From contig NC_135758.1 of NCBI RefSeq assembly GCF_052425735.1, positions 26,040,001 through 26,104,000 on the forward strand: 64,000 nucleotides of DNA, written 5' to 3'. Shown piece by piece: positions 2,388-25,416 of the stretch. The position numbers and the translations under genes were made by a program. The notes below the pieces were generated by a model. The model saw only the letters and a list, made by a program, of their open reading frames with translations. It was not told where the DNA came from and searched no databases. Position 1 is the first letter of the stretch. Each line of letters opens with the position of its first letter. The DNA is from Oculina patagonica. Taxonomy: Eukaryota.

Positions 2388-2538
2388 AGGCCGATTTACA
2401 CGGTACAATTTTGTCGCGTGCGACATGCTTACGACACGAATTGCGTCGTGTAAATCGAACCTACAACTCGCTTACGACTGTCGTAGGCGTGTCGTAAGCT
2501 TGTCGCATGCAACAAAATCGTACCGTGTAAATCGGCCT
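2388..2538. mobile_element. PIF/Harbinger-type palindromic MITE
   Basis: TIR AGGCCGATTTACACGGTAC / GTACCGTGTAAATCGGCCT, long internal palindrome, TTA target duplication at 2385-2387 and 2539-2541. Confidence 0.8.
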
Positions 2539-8345: not shown

Positions 8346-9404
8346 AGTCATTAAACGATCCCGGTGACAAAGACAAGGAACTACAATAAAAGAAGCTTCT
8401 TTGTGAATGAAACCATAAACAATTACATCTACGGGGTGTTTCTAGGCTACTGGAAATAATAACAAGACACTGTAAACGTCGCATCGTTTATTAAAAGTTC
8501 TCTAACTGATCACTTACACAACATGACAATCCATGAGCATAGTACGACAAGTCCTCGTGTTTTATTTGTTTCCACTGTTTGATATAAAAAGTATCCATTT
8601 TGTTTGCACTTGGTTTTGTTTCAATTCTTTGTTACGCTTTGTTTCTTTGTTAATATTTTGTAATTCTTTCCATTATGCTTGTATTCCTCTTGTTTACCTT
8701 TTAAGTCTTTTTCAACACCTTGTTTTTTCATTTTTTTGTTCTTTTATTTTTTCGTTTTTTATATTTTTTTAAATTATTATTGTAATTTTTGTTGTTGTTA
8801 CTGTTTGTTGTTGTTGTTGTTGTTTTTTCGTAAGTCGTTTTAGTTTTCCTTGCTTCAGCTAGTGGAATGGAGATAATTCTTAACATGTTTCAACTGTCAT
8901 TTGTTTTACACTGTTATCAGCGTACTTCAATACATAACGTTTCAACATACTAAACGATCTTAATTATTCAATATTCACTATTTTCTCTTGCTTCTTTTTC
9001 AATTTTTTTTCAATCTTTTTATGTTATTCACCTTTTTATATATTTTTTCTGTTCTTCAGCTCCTCCTCCCCAAATAAGGAAGGGGGCCGTTATTATTTTT
9101 CTTTTTTGAGTGAGCTTATGTTCACTTCGTTGTGTCAGGTATCCCATCGACTCTTGTCGAGTGCCTGACATGCTGCTGCCTTTTAGCGTAATGTAGTTAG
9201 ATGTCACCTGGAATACTGCTGACCACTGGGTTCAGCCCAGTTGAAAGGTTCTCATTTTCTGTTAACTTTTTACGGTATGATGAAGAGACTGGCGTCATGC
9301 CAATCCCCCAACGTAGAGGAACTGGGATTTCCTTCTATAAGTCGCTGTGTTCCGTTAATTTAAGGCACTAAACACTCGCCTTATAACATTGCATTTTGCA
9401 TTTT

Positions 9405-9569
9405 GCCGTTGTCGCTTAGCTGCAGTAGCACTGCATTACCAGGGTTACGACGAGGACGTGCGACATCCGACTTGGTGGTAGAGTCTATGACATGGTGGGA
9501 ATGCTTGCAAGGCACAACTGGTAGCCTCAGTGCACCCCACCAAGACCCATTATACCACCCTTCAACCCC
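9405..9569 (-). ncRNA. HDV-like self-cleaving ribozyme (copy 2)
   Basis: Same nested double-pseudoknot core as copy 1; only the P4 loop and J1/2 differ; G1 at 9569, catalytic C at 9419. Confidence 0.85.
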
Positions 9570-9620
9570 GCATAAACGTCGTGTAAGTCATGTTAAAATT
9601 CGATAGAACGTGAGTTAAAA

Positions 9621-9743
9621 TTATTCATCTATACTTGATAGAATATCTGTCAGTTGTTGAACCACTTCTGCTCTCTGCCTCTTCTGCAAGGACAAGCTAG
9701 GATTGGACTTCATGTTCTGTCGAACTTGGGCACAGAAGTCATC
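9621..9743 (-). CDS. A2 DED-Bcl-2-like protein, exon 2 (DDFCAQVRQNM...EVVQQLTDILSSIDE*)
   Basis: tttacag acceptor, open frame, homologous to the other A exon 2s. Confidence 0.85.
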   Translation of the reverse strand, partial: DDFCAQVRQNMKSNPSLSLQKRQRAEVVQQLTDILSSIDE

Positions 9744-12664
9744 CTGTAAATAAATTTTAAAAAAGGATTAATTCAGAGGAAAAATATCTGTTTGCAGTTT
9801 GTGAGTATAAAACCTTCAAATAAAGGCTTTGTGATGCAAGTGCAAACGGTCTACCCACTGAGTCATATATGTAGCTATTTGGAAGGAGCCGACAGTGCTT
9901 CGAAGTTCCGCATATATCACAAAGACACATGAGTTAAAATGCCATTGGAGCTAGCCTCACTTAATTTAAAAGTTGATTTCCTCTGCTAACTGCGAAAATT
10001 ACTTCCTGAATTAGGAAATTTCTGCGCGAGAGATCGAATTTTTGTTCCGCTGTCGAGATCATTATGCTACATTAACCTACAATTAACGACGTTTTTGACG
10101 ATTTTCCAAAGATTTCCGACCGTTTCCCGATGATTTCCGAAGATTTTCAAAATGTTGTCCGAAGGTCGTAAAATGTTTCCTAACATTTTCCGAACTTTTC
10201 CAAAAATTCCGAAGATTGCCGAGGAAGATACGAAGATGTTTCGACCTAATATCGATAAACTTTGGTCAAATGAGCATTAAATGAGATGATTGGTCAATAA
10301 TGATATCACACATGTGCGGATATCATTTTTGGGATGCCTAAAGGCATCCTAGTTGTTTACAGGGTGCGTGTGTATTTCCCTTGGGAATGAGGATAATTGG
10401 ATTAACAACCGAAATAACCAATAACAGCATCATATATTGGTCCCTTGGGTGTTGGGCAAACAGGTTTTGGCAAGGTTGGCTTAAATTGTGAGGAATTGAG
10501 GAAAACAGGTTTTGATGCGAAAGACAAGGAAATTAGTCAAATGCATGAACTCGAGGATAACTGGTTTTGCAAGGTGATTGATGGATTGTTTCTATTTTTG
10601 TGTTCAGCTGCGTGTAAACAAAAGCGCTTAAAAGTTCCTTTCAATTAACCCGGGAATTAACCGCCCGAACTAGCTAACATCTAAATTATTCAGTTTCAAT
10701 TGGACTCTCATTCCTCGTATCGTTAGAGCGACTGGCGGAAATGCGTTGACTATGCCAATATGATAAGCAAAAGCGATTTATTTTGGTATTTTCCTTCGTG
10801 AAAGCTAAAATTCCTTGCCGTTCCGTCAAATGTCTACACTTTCAGTGCGTTGCTAATTAAATTAGCTAAATCAGTTACATGCGGCTGACTTTTTCCAATA
10901 ACATTAAATCAATATACAGTACTGCATGTGTCTTAAAATTTAAACAAAGTTTTATTAACAAAAGAGTGTTTGTTTGACTTAAGTAAACTGTAGTAAAAAA
11001 TACTCGTGAATTAAGACGTTTTTCGCCACTTTTGTGTCTTACGTGATGTCTGTTGAAATTTAATTAACAATAAAGTAAACACGCAAAGAGCTAGCTTTAT
11101 ATTTTTCGCTAATACATCGCTTAATTCAAACTTTAAAAGCATTGTAGTAGCTAAAAAATTTCAATATTTTTGGGGGTCGATAAGGATTATCCTTTCGATA
11201 TTTGAAGAACATGAAAAAAGAGTTTGTTCGCCTTCAGTACAACGTGTTGACAGCGTTCTTCTATTTGGATAGTAGACATGCTGTGTAAATAGTTCACATC
11301 GAATCCAAAACAAAACGTTTCGTTCCTCATGAAACCAACCTTACAAAATGCTTCCCGAGAAAAAAATTCGTTTTCTATTGGAGGAGGTTGCCACTCGCTC
11401 ACCGGTCGCCATATATAAATATAGTTGGCTACCAATTCCAAGAAATTTCTCCGAGTTTAAGTCTTTTGTCGATTTTACTTTTTTTCGCTCGCAGTGAGAA
11501 GTGCCGAGATTGAGACATGCACTTTACCCGAGGGACAATAAGAGGGAGCCTTATCAGGTTCTGCACCGTGGTACTCCTCTTTAGTGTGTTGTAAAGGCAC
11601 CTTGAATTAATTTATTGAGATGTCGTTCATGTTTACGGTCCTTCAATGTTCTCAGTTTTAAAAAAACTTACCCTGAACTATATCAGTGACTATATCCACT
11701 GTTGCCCTTACCATAAAAAAAAAACTATAACGGAACTCTTCCGACCAATGTAGTCTACGGTTTATTATAAAGCATAAAACATCTTTACGGCATCCCCATT
11801 TGTTGCTACTTTTCCAGCAACAAATCTACTTGTTATTAATAATCTGCTTTAGTTTATTCCTGGACTAGGCGGAAACTGTGCTCAGACTATGAGATGAAAC
11901 AGGAACCCATTGCCTGGATGAAATTAGGCCTAGATAAGGCGATTGATAGAACTTAGGTAGATTTTGGCTACGGTTATATAGAGATTGGGATAGGGCAAGA
12001 GAATATGTGGCGCTTTATCTAATAAACATTTTGGGATTTGGAGGATCAATGCCAGAGGTTACGGTTAAATTTTGGACAGTAATATGCATTTTTTAGAAGA
12101 AAAAAATGTCGATGAAAGTGAACAAAATTCTACATCGACCGTTAACGGAAGGGAAGGGCGCAACGAGGAAGCCGGGAAAGCAAACCACGGCGGGGAGGTG
12201 AAAAAATAAAAAAATTCGCTAGAAACACCGGATTCTTTGTTATGGCTCAGCCTTCTCTTTCAGCTGCCAGCCGCCACTTCTGATAAATAATTAAACGACA
12301 GACTGCTTCTTGTGGCAAGAGATAAAAGATGCTAAATATTTGAATATACTGATTAAAATAAAATACAAAATCGCCCGATAATTCGGTTCAACGGGGAATC
12401 AAACGGTGGTAAGCAGCATCTGCATCAAAATCGAGTGCCACCGACCAATCAGTACATCATGCACAAACTTTTGTTTCCATTTAGCGATCGCTAAAATATT
12501 TTCAGCCTTGGACCCGTTTTCTTTCGCTTTCGTTTTGGATCATCGTACAAAGACTGTGTGGCGTGAGAAGACAAAATTCGCAAAATACAGTGCTCGGGCC
12601 TTCGCGGCTCAATCAATAAGTAGAATGATCACCTTAAAAATTTGCCATATATTTGTTAGCTTAC

Positions 12665-13336
12665 CCAGCTTCCCAGTTCCGTCATTCGAGAGCAGAGCTC
12701 ATCAGCCGCAGTGAAACACAGCTCCACCATCGGTTCTTGTCGTTCTTCGTTCATGGAGGCGGCAGCGATGATTTCTCCGGCAATGATAACAAGCATAGTA
12801 ACTCCTCTCCACGAAAACGTCAGTTCTGTACAGTCGATATCCTCTTCAAAATCCACCAACTCTCTCCTCATCTCGTTACTCGATTCCACTGTAGGGATGA
12901 TAGCTGTGATGTCAACTTTGTCTCGAACGATTTCTCTAAGTCTCCCTAAATACCCAGCTACTCTTTTTACGGCCACAGAAGAACAAAGTAAATCCGATTG
13001 TAAGATTTTCCTCGCATGGAAATCCAGAAGTAGTGTCAGATCCCGCTTGATTTCAAACTTGGTCAACTCAGCAACGATGTCAACTCTTCTGATTTCATGC
13101 ATAGCATCCTTCACGAAATTTACGTCTTCCCACGAGATCTTTCTCTCGTGCTCTAAAGTATGTAATATGTCAACAGTATCAGTAACGTTTGTCGGGACAA
13201 GTCCGTTGCAGTATTGACGAAACTTTCTCTGGTGTTTTTTACCCAAATTAAATGAAATCTGTAGTAAAACACCATTGTAAGTTTGTCTCAGTTTGTCAGT
13301 CACAGTATGTGTCGAAGGTAACATGGCAGATGCCAT
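12665..13336 (-). CDS. A2 DED-Bcl-2-like protein, exon 1
   Basis: DED (RRVDI) plus Bcl-2-like region; ends ELGSW|gtaagc; ATG 13336 lies downstream of the TATA box at 13387-13393. Confidence 0.88.
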
Positions 13337-13386
13337 TTGTAGTTCAGTCAGTCCAGCTAAGCAGCTAAGCGAGTGCATTCCCGGCT

Positions 13387-13518
13387 TTTTATATCTTAGA
13401 ATGTTAAACAACACCAAATTAGGGAAGTGTGATGACGTGGTTTAGAAAACTTCTTAGCAACCATGAATAATACATTTTGTTGTGCCCAGGTCACTCCCAG
13501 TCACAAAAAAGTGAAAGT
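13387..13518. promoter_or_regulatory. A2 promoter: TATA box, TGACGTGG (CRE/UPRE-like) and IRF-type AAAGTGAAAGT
   Basis: TATAAAA on the minus strand at 13387-13393, TGACGTGG at 13433-13440, AAAGTGAAAGT at 13508-13518; the same motifs occur in the A3/B1 spacer. Confidence 0.55.
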
Positions 13519-22776: not shown

Positions 22777-22935
22777 TTAGTTGTGACTACTATTTACTGG
22801 AAAGAAGATAGCATCTACAAACTGTTGAACTACTTCTGCTCTCTGCCTCTGCAAGGACAAGCTAGGATTGGACTCCATGTTCTGTTGATGGTAAACTAGA
22901 TTGTATCTTGCCTTCACGTGGACACAAAAATCTTC
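22777..22935 (-). CDS. A3 DED-Bcl-2-like protein, exon 2 (EDFCVHVKARY...EVVQQFVDAIFFPVNSSHN*)
   Basis: tttatag acceptor, open frame. Confidence 0.87.
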   Translation of the reverse strand, partial: EDFCVHVKARYNLVYHQQNMESNPSLSLQRQRAEVVQQFVDAIFFPVNSSHN

Positions 22936-24241
22936 CTATAAATGAAATTAAAAGAAATTAAATCACTAAATTCAGCGGAAAGGGGGGGGGGGGGTGGGGC
23001 TCAGCCCCACCCCATGCCGTGTTCATTGTTGTCTGTTTAACGTATTTACAGACGTGGTTTCCTTTTTTATTTAAGAATACCGCTAACAAATCCGCGTGAC
23101 CGTCTCATCTATATTTAACAAATTTGTGACTGCAAGAGCCAGCTGCTTTTCAAGAAATACTGCGAATAAATTTTTGTGTGTGTTATTTATTTGAAAGCCG
23201 TGTAAGTGACCGGTCAAAATGACCGCCGAACCAAAATTTTGTCCGGACAAATCGTCATTTTGGCCGGACATTGTCCTTTGACCGGCCGTTATTTTGAGCC
23301 CTGGGCTGGGAGGTGTCAAACCTGCAATTGCACTTGTCGACGGGCTTAGTGCACTATTTTGGTATGTAGCAACTTGGAGCTGGCCGAAAGCGCGTTGGAG
23401 TTCCCTCTTATTAGATAAAAATAATGTTTTAGCAATAAGCATGACTGTGCAAGTAAAGGCGTGTGTATAGAACTTAGTATTGGTCCCAATGGCTTCACTG
23501 AATTGTTCTTCGGTCCGGTACAAATCGAATATCACAAGACTCGTCGATTCGAATCCTGTCGAAGCTACCCTTACAGAATTGAAAGCTTGATTTTCTCTGC
23601 TTAATGCGAAATTACTTTAGAATGAGACCAGTTGTTCAGCGTTAATTAATTTCCTTGGTGAACTGATGCCTCCTTTCTGTTTGGTTTCCTGAGAATGTTT
23701 TCGTTACGCCAAGATCCGTAGGCTCACGGTTGTTCCAATTGTAAAAATTGTTGTTAATTCATGATGGTGCTGCTGAAGTAATTTCTAATAAGAGGTTTTG
23801 AATGTTAAACAGTGAAACGTATTGACTGGCCTAATAATGCACTTCTCAATGAGCTCTGATTTGCGTTTATTCCTCTCGACTAACGTACTCGACACCTGAA
23901 GCGACTAAAACCGCATCAGAACACAATATTAAAGCGCCAAGCACATTTAATCAAAAGAAAATATTGTGGATTAGATTTGTTTAACAGGTCAAACGACTTC
24001 CGCCTTGGGTCTTCCTATCTCTTTCGTTTCACTGGATCACGTGTCAAGTTGTAACCAATCGCATAAACTTTTGCAGAATAATTATCTCAACGGGCGCAAG
24101 AACCGAGACCAGCTATTCCGAAATCGAAAAGGTTTGATATCAAAACAAATGAAAGTAAACATACATAAAAAAGCTTGTGTAGAGCACGTAACAGAACACT
24201 ATAGCGGTATATTTCTTGTTATTATACGTTGCATAGCTTAC

Positions 24242-24901
24242 CCAACTTCCTAAGCCAGTCATTCGAGAGCAAAGCTCATCAGCGGCAGTTGAACACAACT
24301 CCGTCAATGCTTCTCGTCGTTCTTCGTTGAAGGAAGCCTTGGTTATGATTTCTCCAGCAATAATAACAAGCATAGTAAATTCATTCCACGAAAATGTCAG
24401 TTCCCTGCAGTCGATCTCCTCTTCAAAATCTACCAACGCTTTCCGAATGTCTTTACTCGATTCCACTGTTAAACTTATCGCTGCGATGTCAACCTTGTCT
24501 CGAACGATTTCCATAAGTCTCACTAAATGTCCTGTTACCACTTTAACGGCTACAGAAGAACAATATAGATCCAATTGTAGAATTTTCCTTGTATAGAAAT
24601 CCAGAAGAAGTGTTAGATCCCGCTTGATTTCAAACTCGGTTAACTCTTTAACGATATCAAATCTTCTAATTTTATGCATAGCTTCTTTCAGTAAATTTAT
24701 ATCCTCCCACGAAATCTTTCTCTCGTGCTCCAAAGTATGTAATATGTCAATAGTATCCTTAACTCGTATAGGAATAAATCCATTGCAGTAATTACTAAGG
24801 TTTCTCTGATGTTCTGTATCCAGTTTAAAAGAAATCTGAAGTAAAACACCATTGTAATCTTGTCGTAGTTTGTCGGTCACAGTTCTTGTTGTCGATGTCA
24901 T
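24242..24901 (-). CDS. A3 DED-Bcl-2-like protein, exon 1
   Basis: gccgccatcATG start; DED (RRFDI); TLLLDFYTRKILQ BH4-like; FSWNEFTMLVIIAGEI BH1-like; GLGSW|gtaagc. Confidence 0.9.
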
Positions 24902-25416
24902 GATGGCGGCTGTGGTAGATGGAATAACAGCCAGGCGAGTGCATTCCCGACATTTTATATCCAAGAATGTTAAACAACACCAAAAAAAGGGAAATGCAGT
25001 GACGTGGTTAACTGAAAGACCTTAGCAACCATGAATACATTTTGCGGTTAGAAATGAATTTTTCAACCTCGTTCCCAAATTCTTTTCCCTTCCTTTATCG
25101 AGAAAGTTCTTTTCTTTCAAAGAGGAAGAGATAGCACTTCGGCTGATTAGTTGGAATTTTTGACATGGCTCGGTTTAACCATGGCAAGACCTCATACAAT
25201 TTTCTTTCCTGCACTTATAAGGAGATCTTTAAATAAATTGAAATGGAAAGGCAGACTAACAACTAGAGTAATTACGAAGACACTACAATTGGTGCCCAGG
25301 CCATTCCCAGTCACGAGAAAGTGAAAGTGTTGAGTGCACAGCGATTACCCGGATGTTCGCAAGTATATAATCATGCGCAATTTGCCGAATGAATTGTGAT
25401 GTTTTAAATCAATATC
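24902..25416. promoter_or_regulatory. Putative bidirectional promoter between A3 and B1
   Basis: Minus-strand TATA at 24953-24959, TGACGTGG at 25000-25007, GAAAGTGAAAGT at 25317-25328, plus-strand TATATAA at 25364-25370. Confidence 0.65.

Follow-up and report, generated by a model that had tools for sequence, protein, structure and literature searches.

The window analysed here, a 64,000-nucleotide (nt) stretch of the Oculina patagonica genome (NCBI RefSeq assembly GCF_052425735.1, contig NC_135758.1, positions 26,040,001 to 26,104,000 of the forward strand), carries on its minus strand a death effector domain (DED) gene, A2, whose 3′ untranslated region (UTR) contains a predicted hepatitis delta virus (HDV)-like ribozyme. 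Positions below are those of the window. Exon 1 of A2 (12665-13417) encodes the DED (Pfam, E = 1.9e-7); its product matches an NCBI hypothetical protein of O. patagonica at 100% identity, and the Atlas clusters nearest to it consist of cnidarian DED proteins. The last coding exon (9621-9743), defined by spliced joints and translation, provides 40 codons and a TAA stop at 9623-9621. A 51-nt spacer (9570-9620) leads from the stop to G1, the first ribozyme nucleotide, at 9569. Beyond the ribozyme (9405-9569) lie the rest of a fragment derived from the 5′ UTR of an RTE-like retrotransposon (9267-9404), which BLAST aligns to positions 1-179 and 238-299 of the full-length element, and the remainder of a long 3′ UTR (8487-9266), delimited by a motif scan and RNA contigs. 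A2 is one of four A-type DED genes in or beside the window. A0 (locus L031) is located just upstream of the window, and A1 is followed by a ribozyme of its own at 2155-2330 on the minus strand. A3 occupies 22823-22888 and 24234-24983. The insertion is present in A0, A1 and A2 (where the paralogue comparison lists it as 9398-9569) and absent from A3, which has the exon 1 and last exon common to the family.

A sequence-only reading of the window had placed an HDV-like ribozyme in sense orientation 51 nt downstream of the A2 stop codon and proposed that it derives from a retrotransposon. Both proposals held up, and every HDV element was recovered on the minus strand between 9569 and 9405 at the same positions and with an identical reading. 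These 165 nt can be read as a full nested double pseudoknot with P1, P1.1, P2, P3 and P4 in canonical order, and all 22 pairs are placeable on the A2 sequence. P1 pairs GGGGUU (9569-9564) with AACCCU (9446-9441) and includes a G1·U wobble (G9569·U9441); the predicted scissile bond is C9570/G9569. P2 is formed by UGUCGC (9465-9460) and GCGACA (9415-9410), and P3 by ACG (9459-9457) and CGU (9449-9447). L3, UCCUCGU (9456-9450), is C-rich and donates the cytosines of P1.1, in which C9455 and C9454 face G9440 and G9439. P4 consists of UGCAG (9435-9431) and CUGCA (9425-9421), and J4/2, GCUAA, holds an unpaired candidate catalytic C at 9419. P2, P3, L3, the 3′ strand of P1, P1.1, P4, J4/2 and the 3′ strand of P2 make up a 61-nt catalytic core (9405-9465); the ribozyme as delimited here also includes an extended P2 end, ACGGC. 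J1/2 is a fast-evolving insert of 98 nt (9466-9563) that forms a peripheral hairpin in minimum free energy (MFE) and RNAalifold predictions. The non-pseudoknotted MFE fold keeps P2, P3, P4 and the J1/2 hairpin and leaves both strands of P1 unpaired, and the pseudoknot is therefore compatible with it.

The origin of the A2 ribozyme was readily apparent from the O. patagonica genome itself. BLAST searches returned at least 29 copies, and in most of them homology begins exactly at 9569. The ribozyme constitutes the first 165 nt of an RTE-like non-long terminal repeat retrotransposon of 3.45 kb with a single open reading frame (ORF) for endonuclease (EN) and reverse transcriptase (RT), and three copies lead into an ORF that starts MKVGTWNVRTMYQIGK. 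A full-length copy (L030:66-3512) has a 1039-aa ORF with Exo_endo_phos (apurinic/apyrimidinic endonuclease), RVT_1 (RT) and DUF6451 domains. This ORF ends about 25 nt ahead of a (TAAG/TCAAG)n-type short-repeat tail, and a 14-bp target-site duplication, ACATTTTACGAAAT, flanks the element. The traits of RTE-type elements, namely a size of about 3.2-3.5 kb, a single ORF with an N-terminal EN and an RT domain, a short 3′ UTR with a repeat tail and a target-site duplication, are all present in this copy. The nearest Atlas clusters of its ORF are EN+RT proteins, some of them auto-named 'craniofacial development protein 2', a name which we take to come from an RTE/BovB-derived gene. Target-site duplications abut G1 in the full-length copy and, at 12-18 bp, in six independent short copies (L004, L007, L009, L011, L013/L014 and L025), which argues that G1 is the in vivo start of the RNA from which members of this family are copied. 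Such a start is as expected if the ribozyme frees the element from read-through transcripts. The demonstrable RTE homology of the A2 remnant is restricted to 9569-9267, or about 300 nt.

Substitution patterns within the family provide a separate line of evidence for the fold. Across 18 RTE-family copies, 98% of 350 pair cells are standard, and changes on both sides occur at three pairs, two in P3 and one in P2. The P3 variants are ACG/CGU, AUG/CAU and ACA/UGU, and those of P2 are UGUCGC/GCGACA and UGUUGC/GCAACA. Each of six slid controls gave zero both-side changes, and 0-7 of 500 shuffles reached the observed values. P1, P1.1 and P4 are invariant across family copies and are uninformative for covariation; the J1/2 hairpin also contains compensatory pairs according to RNAalifold. 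The equivalent of C9419 is unchanged in all 18 copies. A degenerate core pattern, allowing exact or near-exact matches, was found 23 times genome-wide, versus 0 times for the reversed control. Because of the copy number, the excess of core matches over the reversed control, and the covariation, the motif is far beyond chance, and on its sequence we regard it as a genuine HDV-like ribozyme, with predicted catalytic activity, that stems from an RTE element. The possibility that there is no ribozyme here and that the locus is a fortuitous match to an HDV descriptor can draw on a single-sequence fold z-score of only −1.26 and on the Rfam result considered below. It is effectively refuted by the multi-copy family, the P2/P3 covariation, the empty reversed control and the target-site duplications at G1, and we assign it a negligible probability.

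Two further candidates related to the ribozyme sequence were rejected. An extended P2 pairing, GUCG/CGGC, is without covariation support, as the changes in L013 are not compensatory. ORFs running antisense over the ribozymes (9403-9606 and 2158-2388, both on the plus strand) are a by-product of DNA conservation and give no sign of coding.

Many of the dispersed copies are short (347-555 nt) and internally deleted, with the ribozyme-bearing 5′ end and the 3′ end retained. In the short copies (L004-L025) the 5′ end is joined to the 3′ end (CCGGCCCTTTGCCCACTTAGGGCTT...) at a breakpoint unique to each copy. The differing breakpoints suggest recurrent de novo internal deletion or template jumping, and not a single amplifying short interspersed element (SINE). 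L013 and L014 (G000:C9:23183616-23193814) are situated about 10 kb apart and have identical flanks and a common target-site duplication, ACAGATTCGTTT, and thus represent a local segmental duplication and not two insertions. The full-length copy lies about 380 bp upstream of an ORF for a rhodopsin-family G protein-coupled receptor (L030:3888-4550; 7tm_1, E = 8e-19). We also considered the A2 copy as a complete short element with an RTE-like 3′ end near 9090; its alignment to the RTE body and 3′ end was no better than that of shuffled sequences, and this candidate was discarded.

A2 is transcribed through the ribozyme. Runs X1, X3 and X7, from three studies, are RNA: their contigs skip 9743-12664 (GT..AG) and leave the intron uncovered, and run X15 spans the whole stretch. 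The joint between 9742/9743 and 12664/12665 is found in X1 and X7. Spliced contigs that begin in exon 1 cross 9570/9569 and extend to 9396 (X1), 9450 (X3) and 9447 (X7); at these points the repeated core branches the assembly graph. Further RNA contigs cover 9052-9171 and 9193-9335 (X1) and 8955-9425 (X7). The spliced contigs indicate that the ribozyme is transcribed in the sense direction within a 3′ UTR of about 1.1 kb. On the minus strand, a motif scan found no AATAAA or ATTAAA between the A2 stop and 8749; the first such signals are at 8748, 8566 and 8492. The sequence-only reading had noted the lack of AATAAA between stop and cut, which is borne out. Its suggestion that the ribozyme might define the 3′ end of the mRNA is not supported, as RNA contigs continue to at least about 8955 and poly(A) signals are located at 8748-8487. 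As a whole, the earlier interpretation is partly supported, and the finding, described below, that the core is conserved among paralogues and in other assemblies is consistent with a host function.

The transcript data contained two other features of A2. Run X3 has an alternative joint from 9742 to 12632 instead of 12664, which retains 32 nt and introduces an in-frame stop after ...ELGSWVS; use of this 5′ splice site would yield a protein that lacks the 40 residues of the last exon. Within the intron, a repeat at 10056-10369 has a summed word depth of about 166,000 in X15, versus about 100 for its flanks, and also occurs in the RNA runs, which marks it as an expressed repeat of very high copy number.

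The unexpected outcome of the analysis was the conservation of the core at the DED loci. The P3 variant ACG/CGU was found genome-wide at none but the three paralogous gene loci, and its confinement to A0, A1 and A2 argues for a single ancient insertion that the gene duplications multiplied. To quantify conservation we slid a 61-nt window along the triplicated unit and scored the 1209 positions at which it aligns in both paralogues. The core (9405-9465) has 2 summed differences and ranks first of the 1209, compared with a mean of 23.3 for noncoding windows and a mean of 14.9 and a minimum of 4 for coding windows. With a noncoding tree length of 0.23, about 14 substitutions would be expected in 61 nt. 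Both of those observed fall at 9429, the first nucleotide of the P4 apical loop, which is the sole core site that differs among the three paralogues of this genome (G, U and C) and is also variable in RNA contigs of X1 and X7. Two changes at the one site that is free to vary speak against recent homogenization. Nor is the core mutationally cold, since younger dispersed RTE copies (L011, L012, L014, L016, L019 and L020) do carry core mutations.

The same pattern extends to other coral assemblies. ENA ERZ25067872 contains two tandem DED genes with a ribozyme 3′ of each last exon (L057:3615-3778 and 12367-12531); its exon 1 is only about 80% identical at the nucleotide level to the genes of O. 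patagonica, and it therefore represents another species. NCBI GCA_044670265.1, which is a close relative or the same species, has ribozyme-bearing orthologues of A2 (98% identical) and A1 and a ribozyme-bearing A0-like gene. The ACG/CGU variant of P3 follows the homologous DED genes in both assemblies. In an alignment of eight gene-linked copies (seven for exon 1), 6 of 61 core columns are variable, as compared with 62 of 104 in the J1/2 insert (Fisher's exact test, p = 7e-11), 30 of 34 in the spacer upstream of G1, and 258 of 651 in exon 1 (p = 1e-6 against the core), where the best 61-column window still has 15. Three of the variable core columns are in the P4 loop, two are non-catalytic J4/2 positions, and one changes a U-A pair to U·G in P1; in these eight copies none breaks a pair or falls in L3, P1.1 or the catalytic C. 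All 167 pair cells of the gene-linked copies are standard. The 5′ strand of P1 (9564-9569), the G1·U wobble and L3 are invariant in eight of eight copies, and C9419 in the seven that cover the position, the eighth (asmY_c) ending at a contig edge. This distribution shows that the catalytic core is under purifying selection at the host loci.

Comparison of the paralogous 3′ ends revealed additional differences among the genes. A block at 8592-8658 (minus strand), with four summed differences among the three paralogues, comes next to the core in conservation among noncoding windows, and contains exact matches of 39-40 nt in two of three paralogue pairs and 34 nt in the third. It lies within a larger block, 8390-8799, that is common to A2, A1 and A0. 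The A2 stretch 8800-9326 (about 530 nt) is missing from A1 and A0, where a (CAA)n microsatellite takes its place. This stretch is present in the second ERZ25067872 gene (L057, about 71% identical over 671 nt), so the long form looks ancestral and the A1 and A0 forms look like deletions. A1 carries a 149-bp insertion (2389-2537, minus strand) with inverted repeats of about 18-30 nt (GGCCGATTTACACGGTAC...GTACCGTGTAAATCGGCC) that resembles a miniature inverted-repeat transposable element and is positioned between the stop codon (2577-2575) and G1 of the ribozyme (2330). An AATAAA is found about 30 nt 3′ of the A1 stop, and some A1 transcripts may end ahead of the ribozyme; an RNA contig with the A1-specific 3′ flank is present as a loose end in X1. 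We examined A3 as a pre-insertion 'empty site' and rejected it, as alignment is limited to its last exon and gives way to unrelated sequence downstream.

The reading that we favor, and hold to be probable, is that A2 and its paralogues carry a host-domesticated, RTE-derived ribozyme in the 3′ UTR of a DED gene, where it probably cleaves in part. An old RTE copy would have landed in sense orientation a few tens of nucleotides 3′ of the stop codon of an ancestral coral DED gene, would since have been reduced to the first 300 nt or so of the element, and would have been passed on through the gene duplications that gave rise to A0, A1 and A2 and through at least one speciation. Purifying selection would have retained both strands of P1, P2, P3, L3, P1.1, the P4 stem and the J4/2 C as the surroundings decayed, and since the core is conserved while its surroundings have decayed, the host most likely uses the ribozyme. 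Some transcripts would then self-cleave at C9570/G9569, parting the ORF from the rest of the 3′ UTR and the poly(A) tail. The 5′ product, with a 2′,3′-cyclic phosphate end and no tail, would be poorly translated or rapidly degraded, and the uncleaved molecules would be the productive mRNA. In this way the production of a cell-death adaptor that is potentially lethal would be damped or tuned. The conserved set corresponds exactly to the catalytic architecture, with a periphery that is free to change, and from this we infer that selection acts on self-cleavage of some of the transcripts. A further idea, to which we give less than even weight, is that stony corals possess a self-cleaving switch in this 3′ UTR, such that partial and perhaps condition-dependent cleavage sets the level of the death adaptor. 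Candidate conditions are temperature, Mg2+ and a 51-nt leader that competes for folding.

Several observations weigh against this reading. An Rfam search, which had been proposed along with the sequence-only reading, covered all families and returned no HDV-like match at the gathering threshold for the whole window or at E<=10 for the local sequence, and gave three chance-level matches only (mir-245, SNORD57 and REN-SRE). We suspect that this result is due to the 98-nt length of the J1/2 insert and to models that are narrow and specific to certain lineages, and we take it as uninformative and not as a negative. When the MFE fold is extended upstream by 60 or 200 nt, spacer sequence directly 3′ of the stop, UUUUAACUC, pairs with GGGGUUGAA and ties up the 5′ strand of P1. 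This pairing may act as an attenuator of P1 formation and could inhibit cleavage in the context of the mRNA. The contigs that bridge 9570/9569 show that uncleaved A2 mRNA exists, and cleavage is thus at most partial; the RNA data consist of assembled contigs only, which are blind to RNA ends and to the cleaved fraction. Paralogue A3 has no ribozyme and an unrelated 3′ sequence, and none was found in the fetched flanks of the distant homologues L056 and L059 (A3-like genes of other assemblies), L061 (Desmophyllum pertusum), L062, L063 and L064; besides the A3-like genes, the homologues without a ribozyme come from D. pertusum and three further assemblies. The insertion is therefore limited to one clade of the gene family, and the family as such functions without a ribozyme. 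Finally, conservation speaks for constraint on the fold, and not for catalysis specifically.

This last point leads to an explanation that we consider unlikely, in which the fold is conserved for a role other than cutting, as a protein-binding or exonuclease-blocking pseudoknot, an element of translation or stability, or a stable RNA that starts at G1. The HDV-like ribozymes of R2 and L1Tc do double as protein-binding sites and as elements resembling an internal ribosome entry site (IRES) (PMC6765202), and a hairpin just 3′ of the ribozyme, AAGGCG...UGCCUU (9381-9361), is well conserved among the paralogues. In X7, depth is greater for the contig 3′ of the ribozyme than for the coding one, although contig depths are unreliable and the runs disagree. 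However, the conserved set spans the residues of catalysis (the G1·U wobble, L3, P1.1 and the J4/2 C) and not those of folding only, and no downstream ORF is left for an IRES to serve. It is less likely still that the sequence is a neutral fossil, a dead RTE remnant in a 3′ UTR whose core owes its identity to chance, short-tract gene conversion or recent ancestry. Fragments of retrotransposon 5′ ends are common in UTRs, the uncleaved mRNA assembles readily, A3 and the more distant homologues lack the element, and the noncoding flank at 8614-8658 also holds a 40-nt identical block. Against this, the core ranks first in conservation and surpasses every coding window, and the fossil reading fits the data poorly. 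The three states of the free loop site in three paralogues point to independent divergence rather than recent homogenization, and a conversion tract is unlikely to have been so precise as to spare the highly diverged J1/2 and spacer next to the core. The core is also kept in ERZ25067872, where identity in exon 1 is down to about 80%, and young dispersed copies do carry core mutations.

It is highly improbable, finally, that the A2 copy serves the element, as a master copy that is read through from a host promoter and whose ribozyme frees a non-autonomous RTE-derived RNA for retrotransposition. RTEs have no promoter of their own and rely on co-transcription and ribozyme release (PMC6765202), and the genome is rich in short, internally deleted copies that have been mobilized. 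Yet the confinement of ACG/CGU to the three paralogous loci implies that this copy has no dispersed progeny, it has no recognizable RTE 3′ end, and selection at the level of the element cannot keep particular host loci across species. Domestication by the host accommodates these observations best in our judgement, at the strength given above.

The ribozyme itself belongs to a known class. HDV-like ribozymes that cut 5′ of G1 head the RTE, R2, R4 and L1Tc elements at their 5′ ends, where their established role is to free the element from read-through co-transcripts, and a P1 of 6-7 bp and a J1/2 of 23 to >700 nt are ordinary (PMC6765202, PMC3774820). Those of RTE, R2, R4/Dong, baggins and L1Tc were reported by Ruminski et al. 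2011 and Eickbush and Eickbush 2010, as reviewed in PMC6765202 and PMC3774820. The A2 ribozyme resembles the RTE/R2 type in its nested double pseudoknot, its 6-bp P1, its large and variable J1/2, its predicted cut 5′ of the G1 that is the first base of the element, and the lack of a promoter, and the dispersed copies in this genome behave exactly alike. The A2 copy differs as an immobile remnant of about 300 nt in a host 3′ UTR with a core conserved across paralogues and assemblies. The R2 short internally deleted elements (R2Dwi_SIDE, as cited in PMC4035085) retain the 5′ ribozyme and are resembled by the dispersed 347-555 nt copies here, which have the 5′ ribozyme, the 3′ end and target-site duplications; the copies here are RTE-derived, and their deletion breakpoint is individual to each copy. 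The SIDER2 elements of Leishmania, derived from L1Tc/ingi, are also degenerate, immobile retrotransposon elements with an HDV-like signature in 3′ UTRs (PMC4035085). Their exaptation for mRNA decay via endonucleolytic cleavage has been proposed, with the link to cleavage unproven (PMC4035085). SIDER2 differs in its kinetoplastid host, its 77-nt Pr77 ribozyme and its hundreds of loci (PMC4035085), as compared with a metazoan host, an RTE origin, a 165-nt ribozyme with a 98-nt J1/2, and a single gene family here.

Two ribozymes of mammalian genes are further near precedents. The discontinuous hammerhead of Clec2, which the sequence-only reading had cited as a precedent, is placed between the stop and the poly(A) site, is conserved among paralogues and species, and lowers reporter expression by tail removal (Martick et al. 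2008, as summarized in PMC2950038 and PMC6765202). The precedent stands for a 3′ UTR ribozyme that lowers expression and fails with respect to class, as Clec2 belongs to the hammerheads and is not HDV-like; no recent retrotransposon origin is evident for it. The CPEB3 ribozyme is a host-conserved, HDV-like ribozyme in a protein-coding transcript whose slow, partial cleavage tunes mRNA output, but in contrast to that of A2 it is intronic, competes with splicing, is confined to mammals and has a short J1/2 (PMC10919898). In the literature searched, the coverage of which was partial, neither coral DED genes nor animal 3′ UTRs had previously been described as carrying an HDV-like ribozyme. As far as we found, the new aspect is the fixed and conserved position in an animal 3′ UTR.

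If the proposed function is correct, this would be, as far as we found, the first natural HDV-like ribozyme in a 3′ UTR to be under host selection in an animal. HDV-like ribozymes are widespread and demonstrated host functions are rare, with the intronic CPEB3 ribozyme as the main animal case. The A2 locus is a clean candidate for the domestication of a ribozyme in an animal mRNA, in that its sequence reveals origin, age and constraint alike: conservation is higher in the core than in the protein-coding exon, and the insertion predates several duplications and at least one coral speciation. DED adaptors are relevant to cell death and stress biology in corals. The case also indicates that, by landing in a 3′ UTR, the 5′ ribozymes of promoter-less long interspersed elements can give rise to post-transcriptional regulators.

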